36,797 bases of DNA. Source: Malacoraja senta. Lineage: Eukaryota. Positions 2,453 through 35,643 of this stretch are shown piece after piece; within the stretch, counting starts at the first letter, position 1; every line of letters starts with the position of its first letter. Both the position numbers and the translations under genes were made by a program. The stretch lies in the NCBI GenBank assembly GCA_038087875.1, contig JAXLNO010006024.1:1-36797 (forward strand). Reading direction: 5' to 3'. The notes under the pieces were generated by a model. The model did not search any database. It saw only the letters and a list, made by a program, of their open reading frames with translations, and was not told where the DNA came from.

Positions 2453-2463
2453 CCAGAGGGAGT

Positions 2464-8248: not shown

Positions 8249-8534
8249 TTTTAGTTTAAGAGATACAGCGCAGAAACCCGGCCCTTCAGCCCACCGAGTC
8301 TGCGTCAACCAGCGATCCCTGCACACTTATATTATCTTACTTATTAGGGGACAATTTACAATTATACCACGCCAATTAACCTACCAACCTGTATGTCTTT
8401 GGACTGACGGAGGAAACCGGAGATCCAGGCAAAACCCACGCAAGTCCCGGGGAGAAGGTACAAAACTCTGTACAGACGGGACCCGTAGTTAGAATTGAAC
8501 CGGGTCTCTGGCGCTGTAAGGCAGCAGTTCCACT
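8249..8534 (-). mobile_element. Second HE1-like SINE, slightly 5'-truncated; repeated in each unit
   Basis: B-box-like GGGTTCAATTCT on the minus strand; body and tail homologous to 7878-8191. Confidence 0.85.
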
Positions 8535-8536
8535 AA

Positions 8537-8969
8537 GTGGGCAAAGCAGAGCCAAATGGAATACAGTGTAGTAAGTGTCTGGTTTTACATTTTGGCAGTC
8601 GGAATAAAGACGTAGACTATTTGAGCTACAAAGTGGGAGTACTAGCGCAGGATTCCCAAATAGTTCACTTGCAAATTGAGTCGGTGGTAAGTAAGGCAAA
8701 TGCAATGCCAGCATTCATTTCGGGGGGCCTAGAATATAAAAACAATGATATAATGCTGAGGATTTATCGGGCACTGGTGAGGACACATTTGGAATATTGT
8801 GAGCAGTTTTGGGCTCCATATTAGAAAGGATGTGCTGGCTTTGGAGAGGGTCCAGAGGAAGTATGTCCTGGAGATGATTGATTTAACGTATGAGGAATGT
8901 TTGAAGTCTCTGTGCCTGTGCTCGTGGGATTTAGAAGGATGAGGGGGAAATCTCATTGAAACCTACCAG
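8537..8969 (+). mobile_element. 5' half of a CR1-like LINE interrupted by the hAT element; also at 19170-19602 and 29792-30222
   Basis: KCLVLHFG...KANAM.AFI..GLEYK...LVRTHLEYCEQFWAP...RMRGNLIETYQ, stopping at the TSD. Confidence 0.88.
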
Positions 8970-11900
8970 CAGGGACGGATTTAGATGAAGAGAGGCCCTA
9001 AACTGTTCCACTTGTGAGCCCCCCGCCCCAGTCCCCCACCCCCACGACTAGAGGAAGATGGTCCACCAGATTGACACCGATTTGCAGCCGAGCGTGGCCA
9101 ATGAGATAAGGGGCTGGAAAGCTGGGCTTTATTTATTTATTTATTTATTGCCTGTGCTAGTGTCGAGTTATTGGCTTAAAACACTATTATTCTGAAATGG
9201 AGGGCAAGGAAAATTACTGAAGGGTTGTTTAGAGACTACAGTGCGTTGTGACAGCATATGTAAGAAAGGCCTATACACCTTGCAGGGCTCTCACTTAATT
9301 TTTTTTCTCTGTTGTCAGCCGGGCAACCTTGGCAGCTTTTAAGTTGCCAAATTACAGTTTAGGTGGTTATTTAAGATGGCTTGCATGGCGCGTGCGATAA
9401 TGTGCTTGGACGAAGTGCATAGTTACCTGTCGGAATTATACTCAGTGAAGCACTCGCATATTATTTCTGCTTTAAATAAAACTACAAACTAAACCGCTGT
9501 TATTTGCTTTAGTAATTGAACCCCTTGCTGAAAAAATAAGAACACACATGGATATCTACGGTTATAATACAAAATATTCAAATAACAAAATATCGTTATA
9601 TGCCGATGATGTACTATTGTACATCACAAAACCACAAATTAGTATACCAAATATATTAAATTTAATTGAGGACTTTGGATCCTTTTCAGGATATAGAATA
9701 AACTGGAACAAAAGTGAAATTATGTCGATAAAACCAAAAGACTCAACACACCTCAGGAAATTCCCCTTTAAAATAGCTATAGAAAAATTCAAATATTTGG
9801 GAATTGAAATTACTAGAAATTACCAGGATATGTTTAAAGCCAATTATAATCCCTTACTTAAGAAATTAAATAATATGATTACATTTTGGAAAACACTTCC
9901 GATGTCCTTAATAGGCAGAATAAATGCTATAAAAATGATTTTCTTACCACAAATCCTATACCTATTTCAATCAATACCTATATATCTCCAAAAAAGTTTT
10001 TCAAAAAATTGGACTCAGACATTACAAATTTTATATGGGATTATAAATCCCATAGAATACAAAGAGCACACCTTAATAAATGAAAAGAGTTGGGGGGTCT
10101 CGCGCTCCCTAACTTTATGTATTATAAATGGGCAGTAAATATTAAAAATATGATTCACCTGCTGGACAATTCTGCCCAGCAGGTGGACTGGATTATAATG
10201 GAAAAAGGGGACTGTTCCCCGAGTAATATAGGAGCGATTATTCTCTCTCCAATAAATTTGAATAATAAAATTTATAATAAAAACCCAATTATAAATAGCA
10301 CAATTAGAACATGGAAACAAATAAAACAGAATCTAAAATTAAGAAACCTATCTCTCTCAATACCAATAGTTAATAACCCATCGTTTAAACCCTCAACCAT
10401 AGACAAATCATTTATACAATGGGAAAGAATGGGAATCAAAACGCTCGAAGATCTGTATGAATTGGGAAAATTACTATCATTTCAACAACTACAACTGAAA
10501 TATAATCTGAAAAATAATCAATATTTTAAATATCTACAAATTCGTGATTACCTGAAAAAATGCACAAAAGACTATCATAATATGCCTTCCGACTTACTAG
10601 ATGAAGCAATGAAGACAAAGGCGGAATCAGCTAATTTAATATCGTACTTATATAATATCATTTTAAACATAGAAATACCCACAACAGAAGGAATTAGAAG
10701 AGACTGGGAACAAGAATTAGCTATAAAAATTTCAAAAGAGAGCTGGGATAACCACTTACTACAGGTGCATAAATGTTCGATCAACGTATACGCTCATCCA
10801 ATTCAAAACATTACATAGACTATATTATTCAAAAACTAAATTAAATAAAATCTTTCCTAATGTTTCACCAATCTGTGATAAATGTCTATGTCAAGAAGCT
10901 ACCATAGCGCATTCTTTTGTTTTTTGTACAAAAATCCAAAAATTTTGGTATGAAATATTTGATATTTTCTCAAAATTAATTAAAATAAAACTGGTACCAA
11001 ACCAGAATGGATCATTTTTGGAATATCGGAAGGTATCCCTGAATTAAACGTGTATCAGAAGAACTTATTCAATTACGGGCTAATAATGGGAAAAAGGCTC
11101 ATACTTAAATTCTGGAAAAATGCGCCCACACCAACAATAAAAATGTAGACATCAAATATGTTGGAAACATTACATCTGGAACAGATGAGATTCCTCTTAG
11201 CAGGGAAAGCAGACCAATTCCAAAAGACGTGGTCTACGTTTTTGGACCTATTACAAGCATGAGGTGCAATAGTAATTTAAAAAATAAATAAAGAAAGAAA
11301 TGGTATCAGGACCTGGTAATGGGAGATAAAACAATAAAAACAGACTTGGTCGGTGGTTCCCTTTCTGCGATTGTTCCTACTTTTTTTTCTTTCTTTTCTA
11401 GGATCTACTTTCTTACTTTACTTCCTTCTCTAACTTCTTTTCTAAGGGGCTTTCTTTTCACAACACTCTCTTGCACCTCACGACTCTTGCGCACTTTCTT
11501 TACTTTTCTTACTTCTATCTTTCTCTTAAAGCTCAAAAAAATGAAGCGGTATAAAAAATGTATTAAGATATAAGTGTTGTGTATTACTGTAATTTACCGT
11601 ACTTCTAATAAAAATAATTTAAAAAAAAATAAAAAAAAAACATATTCACCAATCAGGACATGATATATATCACAATGACATGCAGCAAAATTATAATACT
11701 GTATCTCAACTCTTTTTACACGTTGCAATGAATGCAATGTCTATTATTTCTTTCCACTTCCAAACAAAAATGTGGTTGGATTATTCAGCGTATGATCAAC
11801 CGAAGCGCAGGCTTGGCGATCGCTTCGCACAACACCTCCACTCAGTTCGCAATAACTAACCTGATGTCCCGGTGGCTCAGCACTTCAACTCCCCCTCCCA

Positions 11901-13830
11901 TTCCGAATCCGACCTTTCTGTCCTGGGCCTCCTCCATGGCCAGAGTGAGGCCCGCCGCATATTGGAGGGGCAGCACCTCATATTTGCTTGGGTAATTTAC
12001 ACCCCAGCGCTATGCACATCGGCTTTTCTAATTTCAGGTAGTCCTTGCTTTCTCCCTCGAATTCCCAGCTCTCCCACAGCCTACTGTCTCCGCCTCTTCC
12101 TTTCTTTTTCATGTCACCCATCCCCCCCCTACATCAATCTGAAGAAGGGTCTCGACCCGAAACATCGTCTATTCCTTCGCTCCACAGATGCTGCCTCACC
12201 CGCTTATTTTCTCCAGCTTTTTTGTCTACCAATGGGACCCACCACTGGCCACATCTTCCCATCTCCTCCCCTGTTGGCTTTCCGTAGAGACCGCTCTCTC
12301 CGTAACTCCCTGGTCGATTCGTCCCTTCCCACCCAAACCACCCCCTCTCCTGGCACTTTCCCTTGCAATCGCAGGAAATGCTACACTTGTCCTTTTAATT
12401 AAGTTTAAGACTATGGGACTGTACATTGGCCATAAAATTGCTGCCTAAAAGTGCCAGGGACCCGGAATTGATCCTGAATATGGGTGCTGTCTGTATGGAG
12501 TTTGCTCCTTTTCCCTTTGATCGCATGTGTTTTCTCCGGGTGCTCTTGTTTCCTTCCACATTCCAAAGGTGTGCAGGAACCTATTTCAGACCCAACCCAA
12601 AACGTAATATTTTCCTTTTGTCCAGAGATTCTGTCTGACCTGTTGAGTTACTCCAGCTTTTTGTGTCTATCTTCAGTTTAAACCAGCATCTGCAGTTCCT
12701 TCCTACACACACGATACTATACAATAGAACGTTATTAATCCCAGGTGGGAAATTGTATGTGTGTGTGGGTATATATTTAATACACACACACACATATATA
12801 TTTATATAGTTATATATTCATATATAAATATACACCGTTTTGTTTTCTCGTTTATAACATTGTTTACAGAGTACTATGTTTACATATGCTGTTGTGCTGC
12901 TGCAAGTAAGGATTTCATTGTTCTAACTGGGACGTGAGAGAATAAAACACTCTTGACTCTTGACTTACTTCGCTAATGTGTGGGAAAGAACTAGTGTACG
13001 GGTGATCAATGGTCGGCGTGGACTCGGTGGCCTGAAGGGCCTGTTTCCACGCTGTCTTTAAATTAAACTAAAGACACTAAAACCAGAGGGAGTCTAAAGA
13101 AGGGTATCTACCCGAAACGTCACCCAATTTCTTCTATCCTGAGTTGCTGGCTGCTCCGTGGAGTTCCCCCGCACAATTAAAGCATGGAATATTCTTCACC
13201 CTACCATAGTTACCCAACCAGACGCAACTAAATTTAAGGTACCTTTTTTTCCCCAAAGAACCCTTTTTTGCTTAAGTCCAAGTCAAGAATCAAGAGAGTT
13301 TTATTGTCATGTGTCCCAGATAGGACAATGAAATTCTTGCTTGCTGCAGCACAACAGAATATGTGAACATAATACAGAACAGGAGATAAAAGTTCAGTGT
13401 GTTTATATACCATAGACCATATATATACACAATACATAAACAGATAAAATGCAATAGGCTGTTATTGTTCAGCCCTCTACCACCTCCAGTTTAAATTCCT
13501 TTTAGAATGTTTATGGAGGATCAGGAAACCAGAAGCGAGAGTTACTCCAGGGAGATACTCCTGATCCAGGGTCAGGGAGTGATTCTGTGTTAGTTTTCAG
13601 CGGTTGCGGCGAGGCAGCAATGGCGGCCAAATCTCCCACAATTCAAAGCGAGGGAGAAAGTGCCCGGCGCTGACCAGTTGCCGTGGCAGTGCGCATGCGC
13701 AGGGCGGCCGATGATGTGCGGATGTGCAGGGGAGGACGTGCTGGCCGTAACAATGCGCATGTGCAAGGCGGCCTGCCGTGCCGGCCTAATGAGGAGCGAG
13801 CGGAGAACGGAGACCCGGACACGGATAACG
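8970..13830 (+). mobile_element. Left portion of the hAT-like element, lacking its own right end (truncated at the array junction)
   Basis: CCTACCAG|CAGGGACGGATTTAG at 8962-8984; colinear with 30223-35095. Confidence 0.85.
9494..11640 (+). mobile_element. 5'-truncated L1/Tx1-clade LINE (RT domain to poly-A), frameshifted
   Basis: PLLFALVIEPLA...ISLYADDVLLY...FGSFSGYRINWNKSE...KYLGI reverse-transcriptase motifs; GGLALPNF; CCHC knuckle; poly-A tail. Confidence 0.93.
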
Positions 13831-16800
13831 TGTTTTACCAGCCACTGAGCCACCAAGACAAACATTTCTTTTAATCAAACATTTTTGATTTATTCTAATG
13901 ATTCATATTTCAATTCCCCAGCTCCAACAGAGAGATTTGAACATGTTTCTGGGTCAGTAGCCTGACATTCTGACTGATAATGCAACAAGTGTACATTATT
14001 CTACCAGACCACTGGGTGCATGAAAAGGATCACCTTCAAACCAAGTGATGTTAAATACCACAACCCCCTATCCTCGCTGGATAGAATTAACCCATTCAGT
14101 GCCACCCAGAGTATACTCGGGTCAGAGTATACAAGTGAAAAAAGAAAACAATTATTTGCAGTGAACAGGTTAAATCCTGGTCCAGACCAAAGGATTTCAC
14201 ATGGATGGGCATTTGCAGGGGCCTCTTCCCCAAATATTGATTCTTAGCTTTCCATTTTGGCATAACGTTAATCCCCATTTATGAAGAGCGCAATAAAACA
14301 CGTTCTACAAAGAAACACTTCTGCAATAATCAGTCTGCCATTATCATGAAAAGTAATATAGTCATTCAATTTACCTACCGACCCACGTTGTGTCTCTCTG
14401 TCTCTCGCTCTCTCCCTCCCTCTCTCTCTCGCGGCTCTCTCTCCCCCGTGCGCTCTCTCTCCCGTGCGCGCTCTCTCTCTCCCGTTCCCCACCACTCTAG
14501 CTCTCTCGGCATTCCCGGAATCATTGACGTTTTGCGGTATACAAAAATGCTGGAGAAACTTAGCGGGTGAGGCAGCATCTATGGAGCGAAGGAAATATGC
14601 AACGTTTCGGGTCAAAACCCTTCTTCAGACCCGGCTATTTCCTTCACTCCATGGATGCTGCCTCAAGCCCTGTCCCATTGTGCGAGTTCACACAAGAGCT
14701 TAAAATCTCTGGTAGCATCTCTGTCCCATCTTCAAATTCCCACTTTGAAATAAAATACAGATTTCGACTTAAACAATTTGCAGCAGGATCGCGATTAGTC
14801 GATTCCCACGCATTTTCAATCATCGTTCGATTCAGTGTAAAAACTAGTTGATATAGTTTTTTTTTAAGATACAGTACATTACAATAAATAGTTTCAAGCA
14901 TACCCAGTACTAAACGCACGAACATTAAGGTGGTTACTGATGTTACAAACAGTTATAAATGAATATAATTTCAAAGTGAAATAGGAGATTTCCGTGGAAA
15001 GAATATTTGACCAGAATATGGCGAGGTCGCTGCAAAATGCTCACTTAAAACAATGCGCCGTCAACTCAGGATTGTTTCTTATCCCTCTGACAGGTGTTTC
15101 AATCTCACCTCGCAGCTCGCTGTTAATCGATTCATAGCTATTAATTTTCATTCCTGGTCCGTAAACGCTTCAAGTTACGCTTCTTGTGTGGTGGTAAGGG
15201 GGGGGGGGGGGGGGGTGCTAGGATAAAATACCATATATTTGTATCTATATAGCGATCCTGCTGCGAAATTTTTGTCGCAAGTTGTAATTTATTTCAAAGT
15301 GGGAATTGGAAGATAGGGGCAGAGATGCTACAGAGATTTTGATAGGAGGAAACGTTACAGCAGCTGAGTAAAAGATTAGTCAAATGGTAGGTTCAATGAA
15401 GATCGGGCGAGGGGGATTGGGTGTGGGGGAAAAGTATCTATAGTTTGGGACTTGCTAAATGAGTACTGAGATGGATTATCATTCCACACCAAATTTCTTA
15501 GACAACAATACATGTTATGCAATTATCACAACATTTTGTTGGATATGGATCAACCTATGGTACATGCTCGTAAATTAGTAAAACAAATGTTCTTTAAGTA
15601 CTGTTGTTTCTGGGATGGGATTTCTGATAACAAATAACCTACATTCTATATTTTGTCATAATGTGGCTGAAACAATGGCATATTTTGTGATATTTATTGA
15701 GATAGAAAGATACAACTGAGTTTGGGCAAGATATTACCTTGCAACATTCTGTATGTCTGATAGATATTGTGAAATGGAACAGAAATTATGGGAGGATTGC
15801 ATAAAACTACAATTCAAAGGTAATGAATATACAGAGTATTCTTATTTCCATCATGAACATACAATAGTGATATAGGGCACCAGGTCCTACTACGGTAAAC
15901 TCACGAGCTACTACGGTATGACTACGTGTTAAAAAGTATAAATTTTTTACATCCTGAGTATATTTTACATGTGGACATTTTTCAACATGTTGAAAAATCT
16001 TCACAAGTTACCACGTTTCCCGAGTACCTGCCGTTAGCGCTAAGAAATGGCATGTTGGCCTTTATAACAGGAGGAATCGAATATAGGAGCAAAGAGGTCC
16101 TTCTGCAGTTGTAGAGTTCTAGTGAGACCGCACCTGGAGTATTGTGTGCAGTTTTGGTCCCCTGATTTGAGGAAGGACATTCTTGCTATTGAGGGAGTGC
16201 AGCGTAGGTTTACAAGGTTAATTCCCGGGATGGCGGGACTGTCATATGCTGAGAGAATGGAGCAGCTGGGCTTGTAGACTCTCGAGTTTAGAAGGATGAG
16301 AGGGAATCTCATTGAAACATATAAGATTTGTTAAGGGCTTGGACACGCTAGAGGCAGGAAACATGTTCCCGATGTTGGGGGAGTCCAGAACCAGAGGCCA
16401 CAGTTTAAGAATAAGGAGTAAGCCATTTAGAACGGGGACGAGGAAACACTTTTTCTCACAGAGAGTGGTGAGTGTGGAATTCTCTGCCTCAGAGGGCGGT
16501 GGAGGCCGGTTCTCTGGATGCTTTCAAGAGAGAGCTAGATAGGGCTCTTAAAGATAGCTGAGTCAGGGGATATGGGGAGAAGGCAGGAACGGGGTACTGA
16601 TTGTGGATGATCAGCCATGTTCACATTGAATGGCGGTGCTGGCTCGAAGGGCCAAATGGCCTGCTCCTGCACCAATTGTCTATTGTCTATTGAAACGTTC
16701 CGAGCTCCGACGTACCCGCTACGTTCATTCTACGTGTTTACCACGAGTTTTGATTTTTTTTTTTAACTCGGGAGAGCTCTTGGGTGAACTCGCACAGTGG

Positions 16801-18217
16801 GACAGGGCTTCACACCCGCTGAATTTCTCCAGCATTTTTGTCTATCTTCGATTTTCCAGCATCTACAGTTCCTTCCTAGACATTGTGCGGTGACGGCTGC
16901 ATCTGCGGTTCCTTTCTGTTGGGGGGAGGGGTGCGGGGGGAGGGTCCTGGCCCGTGGCGGCTCCTGATAAGTGATATGTTTCCTCCGCAGGTGCTGCCTT
17001 GCCCGCTGAGTTCCTCCAGCACTCTGTGTTTTTTGTTTGGCTCTGAAGTTGAAGGTGGACCCCCTGTGTCTACCTTCAACTCCCTGTCTGTGGTGGCTCA
17101 GCGGGACGGGCAGGGGCTCTGGGGAGAGGGTTGCGGTTCTGGTCGAGATCCTTCTTCAGACAATCACAAGTACTCTCACCGACGAGAGTTCAGTTCAGTC
17201 TGAAGAATGGTCTTCTCTCCAGAGTCGCTGCGTTGCCTGTCCTGCTGAGCTAGTCCAGCTTTTGTCTGTCTCCAATTTCAGAGTTAGAGAAAATTGCAGA
17301 CTTGATTTATAAAATCTCAAAATTTTGTAACATTGCTAGAAAATGTACTCGCATCTTGAGGCCGAAGGTTAGGTTATTAGCCAAGAAAGATGGACTTTGT
17401 TATCCCTCAGTACAGCAACATCAAGAACGATGTTGTTGTACTGAGGGATAGCCAAGTCTATCCCTCATTGCTAGCAGCTGATGGGAAGCGGCTGTAAAGT
17501 GGGAAGCGGCAGTAAAAGGACAGCGCTGCTGGGGGGGGGGGGGGAGAGAGAGTTCATTTCACAGCGTGTGGGTAGTCTGTCCAGGGGTAAAGTAGCGGGG
17601 AGGGCAGGAGGGTTGAGGAGGGGGTCGGCCGGGGATCATCCAACTCGAGCGGGTCAACAGGCGATGGATAACAGGACAGCGGGCGGTGGAGCTTACTCCA
17701 TATGTCAGGGCGAGTAACCTCAATTGATCCCTTGTTCGCGTTGACACAGGAGTAAGCTCCACCGCCCGCTGTGATGTTATCCATCACCCGCTGACCCACT
17801 CTGCTCTATGATCTTTGCTCTTGAGCTGGTCCCCTCACTGTTCAGACGGAGAGCACTGCCAGAGGTGAGCGGGCCGTCAGAAGGCGCTGAGATGGCAGTC
17901 GGTTCCGCTGTCCGGTGATGGAGGCCGCTCGTAGCCACGCGAGCTGCTTGCCTCCCCGGCCACAATGCGGTGGCTCCGCGCCCGGAGCGCCGTGGCAGCG
18001 GTGAGTGAGTGTTACTGGCATGAACACCGACCCCCTCCTTCTCAACGCTCCTTCCATCCTCGCAACTTTACCCCTGGCTAGACCCCACACGCTGTGAAAG
18101 GAACTCTACCCCGAATTGTCATGTTACTCACGGCCCGTGACTCATTTATAATTATTTATTTATATTTCTACGAATTTTTTTCCCAATTGGGCCCCGCACC
18201 TCCTAAGGCCGGCCCTG

Positions 18218-18417
18218 CTTCTACCCACGGGCCATCGATGTAACGTGGCTGAGAGATGGTGAGGGAGACCACGAGTCTGAATCCAGTGATCTGTTGCCCA
18301 ATTGGGATGGGACTTACCAGCTGAAGAATACAATTCAACTGAGTAGAGAAGATGTGGCAAAATTCTCCTGTTACATCGAACATGCAACTCTGCTGCAGGG
18401 AGTCAATGTTCCACAGG
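18218..18417 (+). pseudogene. MHC class I-like alpha-3 exon remnant, copy 2 (open frame)
   Basis: Same 200-bp exon sequence and donor as 7586-7785. Confidence 0.9.
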
Positions 18418-19602
18418 GTAAGTGGCAAGTCAATGAGGCTGATCACTTGAGACAATAAACCTCCTGGACTGAGATAACAGCCTCAACACACTCTTAACTA
18501 AGCTGTGCATTTAGACTTTAAACTTTAGAGATATGGTGCAGATACAGGCCCCTCAGCTCACTGAGTCCACGCTGAACAGTGATCAGCCCGTACATTTACA
18601 CTAACCAACACACTGGGGACAATTTACAATTTTACCTAAGCCAAGTAACCTACAAGCCTGTATGTCTTTGTAGTGTGGGAGGAAACCGAAGCACCCGGAG
18701 AAAACCCACGCAGTCACAGGGAGAACATACAATGTCCTTGCAGACAGCACCTGTAGTCAGTATCAAACCCAGGTCTCTGGCGCAGTAAGGCAGCAGCTCT
18801 ACCGCTACGCCACTGTGCCACCCATTAATAATTTGTGGTTATCTAATTGCCCAGAATTATTGATAGTCAATGGAATGTGGTTTTAGTTTAAGAGATACAG
18901 CGCAGAAACCCGGCCCTTCAGCCCACCGAGTCTGCGTCAACCAGCGATCCCTGCACACTTATATTATCTTACTTATTAGGGGACAATTTACAATTATACC
19001 ACGCCAATTAACCTACCAACCTGTATGTCTTTGGACTGACGGAGGAAACCGGAGATCCAGGCAAAACCCACGCAAGTCCCGGGGAGAAGGTACAAAACTC
19101 TGTACAGACGGGACCCGTAGTTAGAATTGAACCCGGGTCTCTGGCGCTGTAAGGCAGCAGTTCCACTAAGTGGGCAAAGCAGAGCCAAATGGAATACAGT
19201 GTAGTAAGTGTCTGGTTTTACATTTTGGCAGTCGGAATAAAGACGTAGACTATTTGAGCTACAAAGTGGGAGTACTAGCGCAGGATTCCCAAATAGTTCA
19301 CTTGCAAATTGAGTCGGTGGTAAGTAAGGCAAATGCAATGCCAGCATTCATTTCGGGGGGCCTAGAATATAAAAACAATGATATAATGCTCAGGATTTAT
19401 CGGGCACTGGTGAGGACACATTTGGAATATTGTGAGCAGTTTTGGGCTCCATATTAGAAAGGATGTGCTGGCTTTGGAGAGGGTCCAGAGGAAGTATGTC
19501 CTGGAGATGATTGATTTAACGTATGAGGAATGTTTGAAGTCTCTGTGCCTGTGCTCGTGGGATTTAGAAGGATGAGGGGGAAATCTCATTGAAACCTACC
19601 AG

Positions 19603-22600: not shown

Positions 22601-24435
22601 AGCACCTCATATTTGCTTGGGTAATTTACACCCCAGCGCTATGCACATCGGCTTTTCTAATTTCAGGTAGTCCTTGCTTTCTCCCTCGAATTCCCAGCTC
22701 TCCCACAGCCTACTGTCTCCGCCTCTTCCTTTCTTTTTCATGTCACCCATCCCCCCCCCTACATCAATCTGAAGAAGGGTCTCGACCCGAAACATCGTCT
22801 ATTCCTTCGCTCCACAGATGCTGCCTCACCCGCTTATTTTCTCCAGCTTTTGTCTACCAATGGGACCCCCACTGGCCACATCTTCCCATCTCCTCCCCGT
22901 AGAGACCGCCTCTCTCCGTAACTCCCTGGTCGATTCGTCCCCTTCCCACCCAAACCACCCCCTCTCCTGGCACTTCCCTTGCAATCGCAGGAAATGCTAC
23001 ACTTGTCCTTTTAATTAAGTTAAGACTATGGGACTGTACATTGGCCATAAAATTGCTGCCTAAAAGTGCCAGGACCCGAATTGATCCTGAATATGGGTGC
23101 TGTCTGTATGGAGTTTGCTCCTTTTCCTTTGATCGCATGTGTTTTCTCCGGGTGCTCTTGTTTCCTTCCACATTCCAAAGGTGTGCAGGAACCTATTTCA
23201 GACCCAACCCAAAACGTAATATTTTCCTTTTGTCCAGAGATTCTGTCTGACCTGTTGAGTTACTCCAGCTTTTTGTGTCTATCTTCAGTTTAAACCAGCA
23301 TCTGCAGTTCCTTCCTACACACACGATACTATACAATAGAACGTTATTAATCCCAGTGGGAAATTGTATGTGTGTGTGGGTATATATTTAATACACACAC
23401 ACACATATATTTATATAGTTATATATTCATATATAAATATACACCGTTTTGTTTTCTCGTTTATAACATTGTTTACAGAGTACTATGTTTACATATGCTG
23501 TTGTGCTGCTGCAAGTAAGGATTTCATTGTTCTAACTGGGACGTGAGAGAATAAACACTCTTGACTCTTGACTTACTTCGCTAATGTGTGGGAAGAACTA
23601 GTGTACGGGTGATCAATGGTCGGCGTGGACTCGGTGGCCTGAAGGGCCTGTTTCCACGCTGTCTTTAAATTAAACTAAAGACACTAAAACCAGAGGGAGT
23701 CTAAAGAAGGGTATCTACCCGAAAACGTCACCCAATTTTCTATCCTGAGTTGCTGGCTGCTCCGTGGAGTTCCCCCGCACAATTAAAGCATGGAATATTC
23801 TTCACCCTACCATAGTTACCAACCAGACGCAACTAAATTTAAGGTACCTTTTTTTCCCCAAAGAACCCTTTTTTGCTTAAGTCCAAGTCAAGAATCAAGA
23901 GAGTTTTATTGTCATGTGTCCCAGATAGGACAATGAAATTCTTGCTTGCTGCAGCACAAACAGAATATGTGAACATAATACAGAACAGGAGATAAAAGTT
24001 CAGTGGTTTATATACCATAGACCATATATATACACAATACATAAACAGAATAAAATGCAATAGGCTGTTATTGTTCAGCCCTCTACCACCTCCAGTTTAA
24101 ATTCCTTTTAGAATGTTTATGGAGGATCAGGAAACCAGAAGCGAGAGTTACTCCAGGGAGATACTCCTGATCCAGGGTCAGGGAGTGATTCTGTGTTAGT
24201 TTTCAGCGGTGCGGCGAGGCAGCAATGGCGGCCAAATCTCCCACAATTCAAAGCGAGGGAGATAGTGCCCGGCGCTGACCAGTTGCCGTGGCAGTGCGCA
24301 TGCGCAGGGCGGCCGATGATGTGCGGATGTGCAGGGGAGGACGTGCTGGCCGTAACAATGCGCATGTGCAAGGCGGCCTGCCGTGCCGGCCTAATGAGGA
24401 GCGAGCGGAGAACGGAGACCCGAACACGGATAACG
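19603..24435 (+). mobile_element. Left portion of the hAT-like element, copy 2, truncated at the array junction
   Basis: TSD-like 8-mer at 19595-19602, then the left TIR; colinear with 30223-35095. Confidence 0.85.
20126..22269 (+). mobile_element. 5'-truncated L1/Tx1-clade LINE, duplicate copy
   Basis: Same sequence and same 5' truncation point as 9494-11640. Confidence 0.92.
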
Positions 24436-27400
24436 TGTTTTACCAGCCACTGAGCCACCAAGACAAACATTTCTTTTAATCAAACATTTTTGATTTATTC
24501 TAATGATTCATATTTCAATTCCCCAGCTCCAACAGAGAGATTTGAACATGTTTCTGGGTCAGTAGCCTGACATTCTGACTGATAATGCAACAAGTGTACA
24601 TTATTCTACCGACCACTGGGTGCATGAAAAGGATCACCTTCAAACCAAGTGATGTTAAATACCACAACCCCCTATCCTCGCTGGATAGAATTAACCCATT
24701 CAGTGCCACCCAGAGTATACTCGGGTCAGAGTATACAAGTGAAAAAAGAAAAACAATTATTTGCAGTGAACAGGTTAAATCCTGGTCAGACCAAAGGATT
24801 CACATGGATGGGCATTGCAGGGGCCTCTTCCCCAAATATTGATTCTTAGCTTTCCATTTTGGCATAACGTTAATCCCCATTTATGAAGAGCGCAATAAAA
24901 CACGTTCTACAAAGAAACACTTCTGCAATAATCAGGTCTGCCATTATCATGAAAAGTAATATAGTCATTCAATTTACCTACCGACCCACGTTGTGTCTCT
25001 CTGTCTCTCGCTCTCTCCCTCCCTCTCTCTCTCGCGGCTCTCTCCCCCCGTGCGCTCTCTCTCCCGTGCGCGCTCTCTCTCTCCCGTTCCCCACCACTCT
25101 AGCTCTCTCGGCATTCCGGAATCATTGACGTTTTGCGGTATACAAAAATGCTGGAGAAACTTAGCGGGTGAGGCAGCATCTATGGAGCGGAAGGAAATAT
25201 GCAACGTTTCGGGTCAAAACCCTTCTTCAGACCCGGCTATTCCTTCACTCCATGGATGCTGCCTCAAGCCCTGTCCCATTGTGCGAGTTCACACAAGAGC
25301 TTTAAAATCTCTGGTAGCATCTCTGTCCCATCTTCAAATTCCCACTTTGAAATAAAATACAGATTTCGACTTAAACAATTTGCAGCAGGATCGCGATTAG
25401 TCGATTCCCACGCATTTTCAATCATCGTTCGATTCAGTGTAAAAACTAGTTGATATAGTTTTTTTTTTAAGATACAGTACATTACAATAAATAGTTTCAA
25501 GCATACCCAGTACTAAACGCACGAACATTAAGGTGTTACTGATGTTACAAACAGTTATAAATGAATATAATTTCAAAGTGAAATAGGAGATTTCCGTGGA
25601 AAGAATATTTGACCAGAATATGGCGAGGGTCGCTGCAAAATGCTCACTTAAACAAATGCGCCGTCAACTCAGGATTGTTTCTTATCCCTCTGACAGGTGT
25701 TTCAATCTCACCTCGCAGCTCGCTGTTAATCGATTCATAGCTATTAATTTTCATTCCTGGTCCGTAACGCTTCAAGTTACGCTTCTTGTGTGGTGGTAAG
25801 GGGGGGGGGGGGTGCTAGGATAAAATACCATATATTTGTATCTATATAGCGATCCTGCTGCGAAATTTTTGTCGCAAGTTGTAATTTATTTCAAAGTGGG
25901 AATTGGTAATTTATTTCAAAGTGGGAATTGGAAGATAGGGGCAGAGATGCTACAGAGATTTTGATAGGAGGGAAACGTTACAGCAGCTGAGTAAAAGATT
26001 AGTCAAATGGTAGGTTCAATGAAGATCGGGCGAGGGGGATTGGGTGTGGGAGAAAAGTATCTATAGTTTGGGACTTGCCTAAATGAGTACTGAGATGGAT
26101 TATCATTCCACACCAAATTTCTTAGACAACAATACATGTTATGCAATTATCACAACATTTTGTTGGATATGGATCAACCTATGGTACATGCTCGTAAATT
26201 AGTAAAACAAATGTTCTTTAAGTACTGTTGTTTCTGGGATGGGATTTCTGATAACAAATAACCTACATTCTATATTTTGTCATAATGTGGCTGAAACAAT
26301 GGCATATTTTGTGATATTTATTGAGATAGAAAGATACAACTGAGTTTGGGCAAGATATTACCTTGCAACATTCTGTATGTCTGATAGATATTGTGAAATG
26401 GAACAGAAATTATGGGAGGATTGCATAAAACTACAATTCAAAAGGTAATGAATATACAGAGTATTCTTATTTCCATCATGAACATACAATAGTGATATAG
26501 GGCACCAGGTCCTACTACGGTAAACTCACGAGCTACTACGGTATGACTACGTGTTAAAAAGTATAAATTTTTTACATCCTGAGTATATTTTACATGTGGA
26601 CATTTTTCAACATGTTGAAAAATCTTCACAAGTTACCACGTTTCCCGAGTACCTGCCGTTAGCGCTAAGAAATGGCATGTTGGCCTTTATAACAGGAGGA
26701 ATCGAATATAGGAGCAAAGAGGTCCTTCTGCAGTTGTAGAGTTCTAGTGAGACCGCACCTGGAGTATTGTGTGCAGTTTTGGTCCCCTAATTTGAGGAAG
26801 GACATTCTTGCTATTGAGGGAGTGCAGCGTAGGTTTACAAGGTTAATTCCCGGGATGGCGGGACTGTCATATGCTGAGAGAATGGAGCAGCTGGGCTTGT
26901 AGACTCTCGAGTTTAGAAGGATGAGAGGGAATCTCATTGAAACATATAAGATTTGTTAAGGGCTTGGACACGCTAGAGGCAGGAAACATGTTCCCGATGT
27001 TGGGGGAGTCCAGAACCAGAGGCCACAGTTTTAAGAATAAGGAGTAAGCCATTTAGAACGGGGACGAGGAAACACTTTTTCTCACAGAGAGTGGTGAGTG
27101 TGGAATTCTCTGCCTCAGAGGGCGGTGGAGGCCGGTTCTCTGGATGCTTTCAAGAGAGAGATAGATAGGGCTCTTAAAGATAGCTGAGTCAGGGGATATG
27201 GGGAGAAGGCAGGAACGGGGTACTGATTGTGGATGATCAGCCATGTTCACATTGAATGGCGGTGCTGGCTCGAAGGGCCAAATGGCCTGCTCCTGCACCA
27301 ATTGTCTATTGTCTATTGAAACGTTCCGAGCTCCGACGTACCCGCTACGTTCATTCTACGTGTTTACCACGAGTTTTGATTTTTTTTTTAACTCGGGAGA

Positions 27401-28840
27401 GCTCTTGGGTGAACTCGCACAGTGGGACAGGGCTTCACACCCGCTGAATTTCTCCAGCATTTTTGTCTATCTTCGATTTTCCAGCATCTACAGTTCCTTC
27501 TTAGACATTGTGCGGTGACGGCTGCATCTGCGGTTCCTTTCTGTTGGGGGGAGGGGTGCGGGGGGGAGCGTCCTGGCCCGTGGCGGCTCCTGATAAGTGA
27601 TATGTTTCCTCCGCAGGTGCTGCCTTGCCCGCTGAGTTCCTCCAGCACTCTGTGTTTTTTGTTTGGCTCTGAAGTTGAAGGTGGACCCCCTGTGTCTACC
27701 TTCAACTCCCTGTCTGTGGTGGCTCAGCGGACGGGCAGGGGCTCTGGGGAGAGGGTTGCGGTTCTGGTCGAGATCCTTCTTCAGACAATCACAAGTACTC
27801 TCACCGACGAGAGTTCAGTTCAGTCTGAAGAATGGTCTTCTCTCCAGAGTCGCTGCGTTGCCTGTCCTGCTGAGCTAGTCCAGCTTTTGTCTGTCTCCAA
27901 TTTCAGAGTTAGAGAAAATTGCAGACTTGATTTATAAAATCTCAAAATTTTGTAACATTGCTAGAAAATGTACCGCATCTTGGAGGCCGAAGGTTAGGTT
28001 ATTAGCCAAGAAAGATGGACTTTGTTATCCCTCAGTACAGCAACATCAAGAACGATGTTGTTGTACTGAGGGATAGCCAAGTCTATCCCTCATTGCTAGC
28101 AGCTGATGGGAAGCGGCTGTAAAGTGGGAAGCGGCAGTAAAAGGACAGCGCTGCTGGGGGGGGGGGGAGAGAGAGTTCATTTCACAGCGTGTGGGTAGTC
28201 TGTCCAGGGGTAAAGTAGCGGGGAGGGCAGGAGGGTTGAGGAGGGGGTCGGCCGGGGATCATCCAACTCGAGCGGGTCAACAGGCGATGGATAACAGGAC
28301 AGCGGGCGGTGGAGCTTACTCCATATGTCAGGGCGAGTAACCTCAATGATCCCTTGTTCGCGTTGACACAGGAGTAAGCCTCCACCGCCCGCTTGATGTT
28401 ATCCATCACCCGCTGACCCACTCTGCTCTATGATCTTTGCTCTTGAGCTGGTCCCCTCACTGTTCAGACGGAGAGCACTGCCAGAGGTGAGCGGGCGTCA
28501 GAAGGCGCTGAGATGGCAGTCGGTTCCGCTGTCCGGTGATGGAGGCCGCTCGTAGCCACGCGAGCTGCTTGCCTCCCCGGCCACAATGCGGTGGCTCCGC
28601 GCCCGGAGCGCCGTGGCAGCGGGTGAGTGAGTGTTACTGGCATGAACACCGACCCCCTCCTTCTCAACGCTCCTTCCATCCTCGCAACTTTACCCCTGGC
28701 TAGACCCCACACGCTGTGAAAGGAACTCTACCCCCGAATTGTCATGTTACTCACGGCCCGTGACTCATTTATAATTATTTATTTATATTTCTACGAAATT
28801 TTTTCCCAATTGGGCCCCGCACCTCCTAAGGCCGGCCCTG

Positions 28841-29039
28841 CTTCTACCCACGGGCCATCGATGTAACGTGGCTGAGAGATGGTGAGGGAGACCACGAGTC
28901 TGAATCCAGTGATCTGTTGCCCAATTGGGATGGGACTTACCAGCTGAAGAATACAATTCAACTGAGTAGAGAAGATGTGGCAAATTCTCCTGTTACATCG
29001 AACATGCAACTCTGCTGCAGGGAGTCAATGTTCCACAGG
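28841..29039 (+). pseudogene. MHC class I-like alpha-3 exon remnant, copy 3 (1-bp deletion in an A-run)
   Basis: 199 bp; GGCAAATTC versus GGCAAAATTC in the other copies; donor intact. Confidence 0.88.
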
Positions 29040-30222
29040 GTAAGTGGCAAGTCAATGAGGCTGATCACTTGAGACAATAAACCTCCTGGACTGAGATAAC
29101 AGCCTCAACACACTCTTAACTAAGCTGTGCATTTAGACTTTAAACTTTAGAGATATGGTGCAGATACAGGCCCTCAGCTCACTGAGTCCACGCTGAACAG
29201 TGATCAGCCCCGTACATTTACACTAACCAACACACTGGGGACAATTTACAATTTTACCTAAGCCAAGTAACCTACAAGCATGTATGTCTTTGTAGTGTGG
29301 GAGGAAACCGAAGCACCCGGAGAAAACCCACGCAGTCACAGGGAGAACATACAATGTCCTTGCAGACAGCACCTGTAGTCAGTATCAAACCCAGGTCTCT
29401 GGCGCAGTAAGGCAGCAGCTCTACCGCTACGCCACTGTGCCACCCATTAATAATTTGTGGTTATCTAATTGCCCAGAATTATTGATAGTCAATGGAATGT
29501 GGTTTTAGTTTAAGAGATACAGCGCAGAAACCCGGCCCTTCAGCCCACCGAGTCTGCGTCAACCAGCGATCCCTGCACACTTATATTATCTTACTTATTA
29601 GGGGACAATTTACAATTATACCACGCCAATTAACCTACCAACCTGTATGTCTTTGGACTGACGGAGGAAACCGGAGATCCAGGCAAAACCCACGCAAGTC
29701 CCGGGGAGAAGGTACAAAACTCTGTACAGACGGGACCCGTAGTTAGAATTGAACCCGGGTCTCTGGCGCTGTAAGGCAGCAGTTCCACTAAGTGGGCAAA
29801 GCAGAGCCAAATGGAATACAGTGTAGTAAGTGTCTGGTTTTACATTTTGGCAGTCGGAATAAAGACGTAGACTATTTGAGCTACAAAGTGGGAGTACTAG
29901 CGCAGGATTCCCAAATAGTTCACTTGCAAATTGAGTCGGTGGTAAGTAAGGCAAATGCAATGCCAGCATTCATTTCGGGGGCCTAGAATATAAAAACAAT
30001 GATATAATGCTGAGGATTTATCGGGCACTGGTGAGGACACATTTGGAATATTGTGAGCAGTTTTGGGCTCCATATTAGAAAGGATGTGCTGGCTTTGGAG
30101 AGGGTCCAGAGGAAGTATGTCCTGGAGATGATTGATTTAACGTATGAGGAATGTTTGAAGTCTCTGTGCCTGTGCTCGTGGGATTTAGAAGGAGAGGGGG
30201 AAATCTCATTGAAACCTACCAG

Positions 30223-33200
30223 CAGGGACGGATTTAGATGAAGAGAGGCCCTAAACTGTTCCACTTGTGAGCCCCCCGCCCCAATCCCCCACCCCCACGA
30301 CTAGAGGAAGATGGTCCACCAGATTGACACCGATTTGCAGCCGAGCGTGGCCAATGAGATAAGGGGCTGGAAAGCTGGGCTTTTATTTATTTATTTATTT
30401 ATTGCCTGTGCTAGTGTCGAGTTATTGGCTTAAAACACTATTATTCTGAAATGGAGGGCAAGGAAAATTACTGAAGGGTTGTTTAGAGACTACAGTGCGT
30501 TGTGACAGCATATGTAAGAAAGGCCTATACACCTTGCAGGGCTCTCACTTAATTTTTTTTCTCTGTTGTCAGCCGGGCAACCTTGGCAGCTTTTAAGTTG
30601 CCAAATTACAGTTTAGGTGGTTATTAAGATGGCTTGCATGGCGCGTGCGATAATGTGCTTGGATGAAGTGCATAGTTACCTGTCGGAATTATACTCAGTG
30701 AAGCACTCGCATATTATTTCTGCTTTAAATAAAACTACAAACTAAAACCGCTGTTATTTGCTTTAGTAATTGAACCCCTTGCTGAAAAAATAAGAACACA
30801 CATGGATATCTACGGTTATAATACAAAATATTCAAATAACAAAATATCGTTATATGCCGATGATGTACTATTGTACATCACAAAACCACAAATTAGTATA
30901 CCAAATATATTAAATTTAATTGAGGACTTTGGATCCTTTTCAGGATATAGAATAAACTGGAACAAAAGTGAAATTATGTCGATAAAACCAAAAGACTCAA
31001 CACCACCTCAGGAAATTCCCCTTTAAAATAGCTATAGAAAAAATTCAAATATTTGGGAATTGAAATTACTAGAAATTACCAGATATGTTTAAAGCCAATT
31101 ATAATCCCTTACTTAAGAAATTAAAATAATATGATTAAATTTTGGAAAACACTTCCGATGTCCTTAATAGGCAGAATAAATGCTATAAAAATGATTTTCT
31201 TACCACAAATCCTATACCTATTTCAATCAATACCTATATATCTCCCAAAAAAGTTTTTCAAAAAATTGGACTCAGACATTACAAATTTTATATGGGATTA
31301 TAAATCCCATAGAATACAAAGAGCACACCTTAATAAATGAAAAGAGTTGGGGGGTCTCGCGCTCCCTAACTTTATGTATTATAAATGGGCAGTAAATATT
31401 AAAAATATGATTCACCTGCTGGACAATTCTGCCCAGCAGGTGGACTGGATTATAATGGAAAAAGGGGACTGTTCCCCGAGTAATATAGGAGCGATTATTC
31501 TCTCTCCAATAAATTTGAATAATAAAATTTATAATAAAAAACCCAATTATAAATAGCACAATTAGAACATGGAAACAAATAAAACAGAATCTAAAATTAA
31601 GAAAACCTATCTCTCTCAATACCAATAGTAATAACCCATCGTTTAAACCCTCAACCATAGACAAATCATTTATACAATGGGAAATAATGGGAATCAAAAC
31701 GCTCGAAGATCTGTATGAATTGGGAAAATTACTATCATTTCAACAACTACAACTGAAATATAATCTGAAAAATAATCAATATTTTAAATATCTACAAATT
31801 CGTGATTACCTGAAAAAATGCACAAAAGACTATCATAATATGCCTTCCCGACTTACTAGATGAAGCAATGAAGACAAAGGCGGAATCAGCTAATCTAATA
31901 TCGTACTTATATAATATCATTTTAAACATAGAAATACCCACAACAGAAGGAATTAGAAGAGACTGGGAACAAGAATTAGCTATAAAAATTTCAAAAGAGA
32001 GCTGGGATAACCACTTACCTACAGGTGCATAAATGTTCGATCAACGTATACGCTCATCCAATTCAAAACATTACATAGACTATATTATTCAAAAACTAAA
32101 TTAAAATAAAATCTTTCCTAATGTTTCACCAATCTGTGATAAATGTCTATGTCAAGAAGCTACCATAGCGCATTCTTTTGTTTTTTGTACAAAAATCCAA
32201 AAATTTTGGTATGAAATATTTGATATTTTCTCAAAATTAATTAAAATAAAACCTGGTACCAAAACCAGAATGGATCATTTTTGGAATATCGGAAGGTATC
32301 CCTGAATTAAACGTGTATCAGAAGAACTTATTCAATTACGGGCTAATAATGGGAAAAAGGCTCATACTTAAATTCTGGAAAAATGCGCCCACACCAACAA
32401 TAAAAATGTGGACATCAAATATGTTGGAAACATTACATCTGGAACAGATGAGATTCCTCTTAGCAGGGAAAGCAGACCAATTCCAAAAGACGTGGTCTAC
32501 GTTTTTGGACCTATTACAAGCATGAGGTGCAATAGTAATTTAAAAAATAAATAAAGAAAGAAATGGTATCAGGACCTGGTAATGGGAGATAAAACAATAA
32601 AAACAGACTTGGTCGGTGGTTCCCTTTCTGCGATTGTTCCTACTTTTTTTTTCTTTCTTTTCTAGGATCTACTTTCTTACTTTACTTCCTTCTCTAACTT
32701 CTTTTCTAAGGGGCTTTCTTTTCACAACACTCTCTTGCACCTCACGACTCTTGCGCACTTTCTTTACTTTTCTTACTTCTATCTTTCTCTTAAAGCTCAA
32801 AAAAATGAAGCGGTATAAAAAATGTATTAAGATATAAGTGTTGTGTATTACTGTAATTTACCGTACTTCTAATAAAAATAATTTAAAAAAAAATAAAAAA
32901 AAAACATATTCACCAATCAGGACATGATATATATCACAATGACATGCAGCAAAATTATAATACTGTATCTCAACTCTTTTTACACGTTGCAATGAATGCA
33001 ATGTCTATTATTTCTTTCCACTTTCCAAACAAAAATGTGGTTGGATTATTCAGCGTATGATCAACCGAAGCGCAGGCTTGGCGATCGCTTCGCACAACAC
33101 CTCCACTCAGTTCGCAATAACTAACCTGATGTCCCGGTGGCTCAGCACTTCAACTCCCCCTCCCATTCCGAATCCGACCTTTCTGTCCTGGGCCTCCTCC

Positions 33201-35283
33201 ATGGCCAGAGTGAGGCCCGCCGCATATTGGAGGGGCAGCACCTCATATTTGCTTGGGTAATTTACACCCCAGCGCTATGCACATCGGCTTTTCTAATTTC
33301 AGGTAGTCCTTGCTTTCTCCCTCCCATTCCCAGCTCTCCCACAGCCTACTGTCTCCGCCTCTTCCTTTCTTTTTCATGTCACCCATCCCCCCCCTACATC
33401 AATCTGAAGAAGGGTCTCGACCCGAAACATCGTCTATTCCTTCGCTCCACAGATGCTGCCTCACCCGCTTATTTTCTCCAGCTTTTTTGTCTACCAATGG
33501 GACCCACCACTGGCCACATCTTCCCATCTCCTCCCCTGTTGGCTTTCCGTAGAGACCGCTCTCTCCGTAACTCCCTGGTCGATTCGTCCCTTCCCACCCA
33601 AACCACCCCCTCTCCTGGCACTTTCCCTTGCAATCGCAGGAAATGCTACACTTGTCCTTTTAATTAAGTTTAAGACTATGGGACTGTACATTGGCCATAA
33701 AATTGCTGCCTAAAAGTGCCAGGGACCCGGAATTGATCCTGAATATGGGTGCTGTCTGTATGGAGTTTGCTCCTTTTCCCTTTGATCGCATGTGTTTTCT
33801 CCGGGTGCTCTTGTTTCCTTCCACATTCCAAAGGTGTGCAGGAACCTATTTCAGACCCAACCCAAACGTAATATTTTCCTTTTGTCCAGAGATTCTGTCT
33901 GACCTGTTGAGTTACTCCAGCTTTTTGTGTCTATCTTCAGTTTAAACCAGCATCTGCAGTTCCTTCCTACACACACGATACTATACAATAGAACGTTATT
34001 AATCCCAGGTGGGAAATTGTATGTGTGTGTGGGTATATATTTAATACACACACACACATATATATTTATATAGTTATATATTCATATATAAATATACACC
34101 GTTTTGTTTTCTCGTTTATAACATTGTTTACAGAGTACTATGTTTACATATGCTGTTGTGCTGCTGCAAGTAAGGATTTCATTGTTCTAACTGGGACGTG
34201 AGAGAATAAAACACTCTTGACTCTTGACTTACTTCGCTAATGTGTGGGAAAGAACTAGTGTACGGGTGATCAATGGTCGGCGTGGACTCGGTGGCCTGAA
34301 TGGGCCTGTTTCCACGCTGTCTTTAAATTAAACTAAAGACACTAAAACCAGAGGGAGTCTAAAGAAGGGTATCTACCCGAAACGTCACCCAATTTCTTCT
34401 ATCCTGAGTTGCTGGCTGCTCCGTGGAGTTCCCCCGCACAATTAAAGCATGGAATATTCTTCACCCTACCATAGTTACCCAACCAGACGCAACTAAATTT
34501 AAGGTACCTTTTTTTCCCCAAAGAACCCTTTTTTGCTTAAGTCCAAGTCAAGAATCAAGAGAGTTTTATTGTCATGTGTCCCAGATAGGACAATGAAATT
34601 CTTGCTTGCTGCAGCACAACAGAATATGTGAACATAATACAGAACAGGAGATAAAAGTTCAGTGTGTTTATATACCATAGACCATATATATACACAATAC
34701 ATAAACAGATAAAATGCAATAGGCTGTTATTGTTCAGCCCTCTACCACCTCCAGTTTAAATTCCTTTTAGAATGTTTATGGAGGATCAGGAAACCAGAAG
34801 CGAGAGTTACTCCAGGGAGATACTCCTGATCCAGGGTCAGGGAGTGATTCTGTGTTAGTTTTCAGCGGTTGCGGCGAGGCAGCAATGGCGGCCAAATCTC
34901 CCACAATTCAAAGCGAGGGAGAAAGTGCCCAGCGCTGACCAGTTGCCGTGGCAGTGCGCATGCGCAGGGCGGCCGATGATGTGCGGATGTGCAGGGGCGG
35001 ACGTGCTGGCCGTAGCAATGCGCATGTGCAAGGCGGCCTGCCGTGCCGGCCTAATGAGGAGCGAGCGGAGAACGGAGACCCGGACACGGATAACGGGCGG
35101 TGAGAGAGATAGAGAGGGGGGCCGCCCAGAGTTGAACGGCAGGTGTCCGGGAGGCCCCCTACACTTCAGGGCCCGAGGCTTCAGCCTATGAAGCCTAGTG
35201 GTAAATCCTGCTCTGCGAGCCCCCCCCTAGATCTCGAGGCCCTAAGCTGAAGCTTGTCCAGCTTATATGTAAATCCGGCCCTG
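30223..35283 (+). mobile_element. Complete non-autonomous hAT (Tip100-like) DNA transposon, 5061 bp, containing L1, Penelope and SINE fragments
   Basis: TIRs CAGGGACGGATTTA (30223-30236) and TAAATCCGGCCCTG (35270-35283) match 13/14. The 8-bp TSD CCTACCAG is at 30215-30222 and 35284-35291. Removing the element restores a continuous CR1 frame (NLIETYQ|IMK). GAGGCCC motifs lie near both ends. No transposase ORF. Confidence 0.9.
30748..32904 (+). mobile_element. 5'-truncated L1/Tx1-clade LINE, duplicate copy with many single-base indels
   Basis: Same sequence and same 5' truncation point as 9494-11640; YADD motif retained. Confidence 0.92.
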
Positions 35284-35291
35284 CCTACCAG

Positions 35292-35643
35292 ATAATGAAA
35301 TGCCTGGTTTTAGTTGATGGGAAAGGATGTTTTCAGTAATGGGAGAGTCTAGCACAGCCTCACAATAAAAATACCTACCTTCAATATGGAGATGAGGAGG
35401 AATCTCTTTAGTCACAGGGTGGTGAATCTGTGGAATTCATTGATACAGACAGCTGTGTGGGTCAAGTCATTGCATATTTTTCAAGCAGAGATTGATAGGT
35501 TCTTGATTAGTACGGGTGACAAAGGTTACAGGGAGAAGGCAGGAGAATGGGATTTAGCGGTAAAAATAGATCTGCCATGACTGAATGGTGGAGTAGACTC
35601 AATGGACTTGAAAGGCATAATTCCGCTCCAATATCTTATGGTC
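35292..35643 (+). mobile_element. 3' half of the interrupted CR1-like LINE
   Basis: IMKCLV.VDG...EMRRNLFSHRVVNLWNSL followed by a CR1-type 3'UTR; continues 29792-30222. Confidence 0.88.

Follow-up and report, generated by a model that had tools for sequence, protein, structure and literature searches.

A tandem array in an MHC class I-like gene region of a skate: a probable young segmental duplication cut through a hAT-type element

We observed a head-to-tail repeat of 10.6 kb, present in at least four copies, in an MHC class I-like gene region of the skate Malacoraja senta (single assembly, GCA_038087875.1). The window that we analysed is the whole stretch of 36,797 nucleotides of contig JAXLNO010006024.1. 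The region is probably an ordinary, very young tandem segmental duplication that arose by a non-homologous event and then expanded through unequal exchange. The transposon ends that recur in it would be passengers and not agents. An earlier note on this DNA had proposed that a rearrangement between two neighbouring hAT elements built the array. The genuine hAT element split by the array, the blocks running from its left end to another terminus and the amplified cassette were all borne out, whereas the role of a hAT-hAT rearrangement as the builder was not.

Self-alignment resolved the window into a 3.2-kb partial unit at its start and three full units, the pattern repeating every ~10,630 bp. 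Positions 1-24435 align with 10632-35095 at 99.0% identity, that is, as a single tandem repeat, and 3199/35095 is the precise end of the homology. The units are properly delimited by X at 3200 and Y at 35095 (Table 1). The partial unit matches 10632-13830, 21259-24435 and 31891-35095 at ~99%. Since this partial unit is the interior of the hAT-type element A, the window starts inside the array and at least one further copy of the left end of A lies upstream. The copy number is a lower bound, with the left edge of the array upstream of the window, and both the number and the reality of the array are read from one assembly. On recount in the window, all strings and coordinates of the earlier note were correct. 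The TSD pair that was said to bracket the array instead flanks element A of the last unit, and the array is already running at the window start.

Table 1. Positions of the array units, the inserted element and the host sequences in the window.
Feature	Position	Strand	Description
Partial array unit	1..3199	+	Element A interior up to breakpoint Y
Full unit 1, X to Y	3200..13830	+	10,631 bp; self-alignment
Full unit 2, X to Y	13831..24435	+	10,605 bp; self-alignment
Full unit 3, X to Y	24436..35095	+	10,660 bp, private 25-bp tandem duplication; self-alignment
Junction Y/X	3199..3200; copies 13830/13831 and 24435/24436		A interior joined to SINE head
Truncated SINE head	3200..3223	-	A-box-like motif GGTGGCTCAGTGG; cut by breakpoint X; 13/14 match to head of cassette SINE copy
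B-side DNA	3200..7585	+	Repeat mosaic ending in hAT-like terminus TAAGGCCGGCCCTG
Host cassette	7586..8969; copies 18218-19602, 28841-30222	+	5'-truncated alpha-3 exon, two SINEs, left half of CR1
MHC class I alpha-3 exon remnant	7587..7786; copies from 18219 and 28842	+	FYP start, GTAAGT donor at end
A copies cut off at Y	8970..13830; 19603-24435	+	String match and self-alignment
Left TSD of A, CCTACCAG	30215..30222		String match
Element A, sole complete copy	30223..35283	+	5,061 bp, non-autonomous hAT-type; TSD, TIRs, restored CR1
Last 188 bp of A, outside duplicated unit	35096..35283	+	Two tandem right termini: inner ends 35215, outer ends 35283
Right TSD of A, CCTACCAG	35284..35291		Where CR1 resumes; string match
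Right half of split CR1	35292..35577	+	Collinear with left half (about 8537-8969) after removing A and one TSD copy

Element A is a genuine non-autonomous insertion of the hAT type. Its 8-bp TSD is perfect, with CCTACCAG on both sides, and its TIRs agree at 13 of 14 positions (CAGGGACGGATTTA vs CAGGGCCGGATTTA). Joining the flanks with one TSD kept gives a sequence that lines up with an independent CR1 copy at 5435-5953, without a break in the CR1 reading frame (IETYQ/IMKCL). The element has arms of ~300 bp on the left and ~130 bp on the right. Between them lie ~4.6 kb that include a LINE fragment (RT/zf-RVT), pieces of SINEs and a GC-rich stretch. We found no transposase domain in the window, including all of its units. 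A relative of 475 bp, flanked by an 8-bp TSD of its own (GGTTCGTG), lies on the unrelated contig JYMV01016021.1 (L001:6667-7141, minus strand) and matches A at 1-67, 187-258 and 4929-5061. The second metagenome match to the A-family search (L002) looks like a chance match and was set aside. String counts placed the left end of A (CCTACCAG+CAGGGACGGATTTA) at 8962, 19595 and 30215 and the right end (TAAATCCGGCCCTG+CCTACCAG) at 35270 only, in agreement with the threefold left end and single right end described before.

The B-side DNA is a mosaic of a SINE, a CR1 3' fragment at about 5435-5953 and a 560-bp TIR element. Its terminus TAAGGCCGGCCCTG ends at 7585, the exact break of the alpha-3 exon, where C1-set/alpha-3 homology begins from 7587. 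This terminus matches the right terminus of A at 12 of 14 positions, and we estimate the chance of such a match at a fixed site at ~3e-6. This single 14-nt terminus at the exon break suggests that B may be a hAT-like element. The adjoining string CTTCTACC occurs in the window at 7586, 18218 and 28841 only. Neither a second CTTCTACC nor a plus-strand TIR for B was present in 1-7585, and the left end of B may lie upstream of the array. Position 6585, where CAGAG follows a TSD-like site (6/8), was considered as a left end of B but rejected for its weak TIR match and the lack of alpha-3-like sequence upstream. No transposase domain was found in 3200-7585. The ends of A and B have the terminal motif CAGGGCCGG in common and nothing beyond about 9-12 terminal bases, with no similarity above shuffled controls. 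Neither the A nor the B terminus matched viral or prokaryote genome contigs, and the junction string had no match in metagenome contigs; these collections are without this genome and such blanks carry no weight.

Between the facing ends of B and A lies the host cassette, with lengths of 1384, 1385 and 1382 bp. By profile comparison the alpha-3 remnant corresponds to positions 25-86 of the 86 of a C1-set domain. Among solved structures it best matches residues 203-263 of class I heavy chains. The third copy carries a frameshift in an A-run. The two SINE copies of the cassette are 75% identical. In a word search the remnant had no match among proteins of 46-145 aa, a result that does not bear on full-length relatives, and the tRNA and Rfam scans gave nothing useful. 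The cassette sizes given earlier agree with these lengths and the content with our profile, repeat and CR1 comparisons, and the cassette is amplified in that it is present in every unit. What was amplified of alpha-3 is an exon remnant truncated at its 5' end, so the array does not imply a new immune gene.

The array has a single new junction, at 3199/3200, which recurs in two further copies. On one side of it, Y is inside element A, 188 bp before the right end of A and 120 bp from the inner right terminus. On the other side, X is base 24 of the head of a tRNA-type SINE, on the minus strand, in B-side DNA. In the last unit the sequence past Y continues into the 188-bp right end of A itself. 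We found no transposon terminus and no TSD at the junction or its copies. No homology above shuffled controls was seen between 35096-35400 and 3200-3600, and on the right side of the junction the local alignment score was 19, compared with a mean of 18.1 for shuffles. No SINE sequence is present on the Y side, and a SINE-SINE recombination at the junction was rejected. The idea that a rearrangement between two hATs or their ends built the array is not supported, since the sole novel junction joins the inside of A to a SINE head and is not at a terminus.

An ordinary tandem duplication probably accounts for these features. In the ancestral layout, B-side DNA would have ended within the alpha-3 exon at a hAT-like terminus, and after it would have come the 1.38-kb host cassette, A in CR1, the rest of CR1 and the TM exon. 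A non-homologous event would then have joined Y to X, ~10.6 kb upstream, to give a two-copy duplication. The joining may have occurred by end joining between sister chromatids or by a replication template switch. Unequal exchange between the 10.6-kb copies would then have multiplied them to four or more. We infer this repair mechanism and the later expansion from what is directly observed, namely the array, the junction, A as an insertion and a junction free of homology and termini. Since the left end of A is inside the unit and its last 188 bp are outside, the left end and its TSD appear three times, the right end once, and blocks running from the left end of A to the right end of B arise.

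Could the array be an artefact of assembly? A long-read assembler may have under-collapsed or over-expanded a repeat and inflated the copy number, so that the real genome would have a single unit, or fewer units than the assembly. The units differ by ~0.1-0.5% in substitutions (4-16 per 3.2 kb) plus many 1-bp indels. Among 88 indel events 78 are of 1 bp and 53 are in homopolymers, which is the signature of an unpolished long-read consensus. Nearly all substitutions are private to a single unit, and this star-like pattern also fits an artefact. False duplications are known from vertebrate assemblies, and gaps between the duplicates are listed as typical (PMC9516828). However, the window has no N gaps and so none between units. 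The Y/X junction is a specific novel sequence seen three times, and the units bear larger private markers (one duplication of 25 bp and two deletions, of 12 and 5 bp). Moreover, a purely false duplication of two haplotypes would give two copies, not at least four. We consider an artefact unlikely.

A transposase could also have triggered the duplication, either by alternative (reversed-ends or sister-chromatid) transposition with the right end of B and the left end of A, or by an aborted excision at the right end of A, after which the break was resected and then joined with the sister chromatid. The right end of B and the left end of A face each other 1.38 kb apart, which is the geometry of a reversed-ends substrate (PMC3744419). 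The maize Ac/fAc duplications (Zhang, Zuo and Peterson 2013, PMC3744419) likewise have two hAT-type termini facing at a short distance and a tandem direct duplication nearby. In the reversed-ends model an element terminus with an 8-bp TSD stands at the duplication junction and the segment between the termini is excised as a circle; in maize an Ac terminus forms the junction at the new target, along with the 8-bp TSD, and the DNA between the termini is lost (PMC3744419). In our array the junction is internal to both partners without a TSD, every hAT terminus is still beside its original flank, and the inter-terminus cassette 7586-8969 is retained and amplified in every unit. The lack of a terminus, a TSD and A-B homology at the seam, together with the kept inter-end segment, contradicts both reversed-ends transposition and in-register hAT recombination. 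With a transposase cleavage site 188 bp away from Y, and the inner terminus 120 bp away, a transposase-made break could still have been the trigger, but by our estimate a breakpoint so near one of three termini would arise by chance in ~1/10 of cases. A transposase trigger of either kind seems very unlikely to us. More specifically, it would take a hAT transposase cut at the right end of A, a resection of ~120-190 bp and sister-chromatid joining to seed the duplication, with the A-left to B-right blocks as new composites movable by that transposase; we hold this version highly unlikely. If it were true, hAT pairs would be the driving force behind recurrent 10-11-kb exon-block duplications in skate MHC class I-like clusters.

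In-register or SINE-mediated NAHR between A and B, or between internal repeats, would have made the first duplication and a true recombinant hAT. Both regions contain the same SINE and short-repeat families, and A and B share their terminal motif. This origin is nevertheless extremely improbable: the sequence right of Y (35096 onward) is unrelated to that right of X (3200 onward), no SINE is on the Y side, the hybrid is 9.24 kb long vs 5.06 kb for A, and A and B have no subterminal motifs in common.

The blocks themselves, described earlier as ~9.24 kb long with 11/14-matching TIRs and non-matching flanks, are 9248 and 9238 bp long, and all three points agree on recount. They do go from the left end of A to a hAT-like terminus of another element. 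This hybrid element is a by-product of the position at which the tandem duplication broke, and its mobility is pure conjecture. The ends face outward in the proper orientation with termini complementary at 11 of 14 positions, yet we see next to no chance that the block is a functional composite transposon, mobilisable or already mobilised: the flanks of both copies differ (CCTACCAG vs CTTCTACC) and so neither block has moved, the B end lacks the subterminal motifs GAGGCCCTAA and GAGCCCCCC of A, the window is without a transposase, and no outside copy was found in the scanned metagenome, viral and prokaryote collections, which are without this genome. In macrotransposons or composites and in P-element hybrid element insertion, the ends of two separate elements also enclose DNA in the right orientation, whereas the composite here is without sign of movement.

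Element A resembles non-autonomous hATs (MITE-like or Pack-type hAT) in its 8-bp TSD, short CAG-initiated TIRs, lack of a transposase and 475-bp relative with its own TSD, and, as in these elements, the 4.6 kb inside it are foreign or nested DNA. It differs from them in bearing two tandem right termini, and B is known from one 14-nt terminus. As a whole, the region is most like the tandem segmental duplications of the MHC and other multigene regions. As in these, nearly identical units follow each other head to tail with one novel junction that recurs, the breakpoints are in repeat-rich DNA, and gene fragments were carried along as passengers of the amplification. Nothing essential differs from these. 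One breakpoint here is inside a hAT-type element, and the left end and TSD were multiplied while the right end stayed single. A repeated transposon end with a single partner can mimic a structure built by transposons, and here it is explained by the break position of a plain tandem duplication. The value of the finding is modest: it shows, in a clean example, a copy-number junction that cuts a hAT-type element.

Self-alignment of the window showed an array of units arranged head to tail and repeating every ~10,630 bp. Positions 1-24435 align with 10632-35095 at 99.0%, 1-13830 with 21259-35095 and 1-3199 with 31891-35095. The unit limits were set by the points where homology ends, and the window contains no N bases. 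The exon cassette, a ~1.38-kb host block, was amplified as the earlier note had stated and is present in every full unit.

Units of the tandem array and their limits
Unit	Positions
Partial unit, window start	1-3199
Full unit 1	3200-13830
Full unit 2	13831-24435
Full unit 3	24436-35095

A string search of the window recovered all strings and coordinates of the earlier note. The left junction of the non-autonomous hAT-type element A (CCTACCAG/CAGGGACGGATTTA) has copies at 8962, 19595 and 30215, and the right junction (TAAATCCGGCCCTG/CCTACCAG) was found at 35270 only. Three left ends is the correct count for the window but not for the locus, since 1-3199 continues the interior of A and at least one further left end must lie upstream. 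Element A is complete at 30223-35283 (5,061 bp), where it is flanked by a perfect 8-bp target-site duplication (TSD) and its TIRs match at 13/14 positions. Its flanks, fused with one TSD copy, are collinear with an independent CR1 copy (5435-5953), and the CR1 reading frame is uninterrupted across the rejoined flanks. A is a genuine hAT-type insertion and, as claimed, it is split by the array and keeps its right end only in the last unit. However, the TSD pair brackets A of this last unit and not the array.

The array has a single novel junction, ...CACGGATAACG/TGTTTTACCAGCC..., which joins breakpoint Y (35095) to breakpoint X (3200) and occurs three times (3199/3200, 13830/13831, 24435/24436). 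In the last unit, its left side continues into A's own final 188 bp. On the right, the junction enters a minus-strand tRNA-type SINE head at base 24 (GGTGGCTCAGTGG...), and this head matches that of a cassette SINE at 13/14 positions. We found no similarity between the sequence that follows Y and the one that follows X (score 19 vs a shuffle mean of 18.1) and no SINE on the Y side. The junction thus lies at no transposon terminus, has no TSD and does not represent an in-register crossover between two related elements. The rearrangement between two hAT elements that had been proposed as the cause of the array is therefore not supported. We consider it probable that the stretch between X and Y underwent a plain tandem duplication, later expanded by unequal exchange, and such a duplication alone would dictate the observed structure.

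It is rather unlikely that the array is an assembly artefact or has an inflated copy number. In three-way and four-way alignments of the units we counted 39 columns with substitutions, including several alignment artefacts, and 88 indel events, 78 of them 1 bp long and 53 within homopolymers. Units differ pairwise by 4-16 substitutions per 3.2 kb, and nearly every difference is confined to a single unit. With so many indels, the pattern resembles long-read consensus noise over very little real divergence, which would fit an artefact, and it implies that the units are very young or homogenised. However, a few larger private markers speak for the units being distinct copies: unit 3 has a duplication of 25 bp, and unit 2 has deletions of 12 and 5 bp. 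Gaps between copies are typical of false duplications (PMC9516828), and their absence between the units argues against this type of artefact. The copy number comes from one assembly and is provisional.

A transposase-triggered break is a still less probable origin. The route by which hAT elements are documented to make tandem duplications is that of maize Ac, reversed-ends transposition. There, a terminus of the element lies at the junction along with an 8-bp TSD, and the DNA separating the two reacting termini is cut out (PMC3744419). In the skate array, by contrast, the cassette between the termini is kept in every unit, every hAT terminus still adjoins its original flank, and the junction of Y with X is internal and without a TSD.

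The supposed second hAT element, B, is known from one terminus only. CTTCTACC stands directly after ...TAAGGCCGGCCCTG at 7586, 18218 and 28841 in the window. The 14-nt sequence that ends at 7585 agrees with the right terminus of A at 12/14 positions and with the left terminus at 11/14, in line with the earlier view that the internal blocks end at another hAT-like terminus. This sequence lies exactly where the MHC class I alpha-3 domain homology starts. Of the 86 positions of the C1-set profile, the remnant spans 25-86, and among solved structures it best matches class I heavy chains (residues 203-263). A terminus exactly at the exon break is good evidence for an insertion end, and the chance of such a match at a fixed site was estimated at ~3e-6. 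Within 1-7585 we found no B left end, second CTTCTACC or transposase remnant. The B-side DNA (3200-7585) is a mosaic in which a SINE (~3224-3390) and a CR1 3' fragment occur together with a 560-bp TIR element that has an internal palindrome. This TIR element (28172-28729, copies ~6917-7474 and 17550-18106) has 80-nt inverted arms (84%) around the 154-bp palindrome, lies 111 bp from the B right end and probably represents a nested MITE or a foldback element. The third alpha-3 remnant (28842-29045) is frame-shifted by a 1-bp loss in an A-run, which could reflect either a true mutation or an error in the consensus.

Homologous recombination between the two elements is highly improbable: A and B have no common sequence past the terminal 9-12 bases, the A subterminal motifs GAGGCCCTAA and GAGCCCCCC are absent from B, and the right sides of Y and X are unrelated. 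We give least credence to the ~9.24-kb stretches from A-left to B-right being a working composite transposon, since their flanks do not match and these blocks have thus not transposed.

A consists of a ~300-bp left arm, ~4.6 kb of inner DNA and a ~130-bp right arm. Besides SINE pieces and a GC-rich stretch, the inner DNA contains a LINE fragment with Pfam matches to RVT_1 (9476-10135) and, at a score under the Pfam cut-off, to zf-RVT (95-628). A search of 30 reading-frame pieces spanning one unit yielded no transposase domain. The GC/CpG-rich stretch (~2930-3199), just left of the breakpoint and with copies in every unit, carries GCGCATGCGC-type palindromes and GCCGCCATT, and may be captured promoter DNA. 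An open frame at 1229-1654 (...HFNSPSHSESDLSVLGLLHGQSEARRILEGQHLIF...) has no Pfam match; we take it to resemble the C-terminal endonuclease region of Penelope-like retroelements, which are common in cartilaginous fish. A ends in two tandem right termini (35202-35283), 68 bp apart. The outer one, ending at 35283, adjoins the TSD, and the inner one, ending at 35215, is homologous to the end of a 475-bp MITE.

This MITE lies at 6667-7141 of contig JYMV01016021.1 and was found when metagenome contigs were scanned for a degenerate pattern of the A left end. It has TIRs CAGGGCCGGATTTAG and CAGTGCCGAATTTCC and its own perfect 8-bp TSD GGTTCGTG, and matches A 1-67 (84%), 187-258 (82%) and 4929-5061 (75%) in collinear order. 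The contig is AT-rich, and no vertebrate-type repeats were seen in it. Since this relative has its own TSD, A belongs to a mobile MITE-like family, and its presence in this contig indicates that the family exists outside this skate genome. The A family may have spread horizontally.
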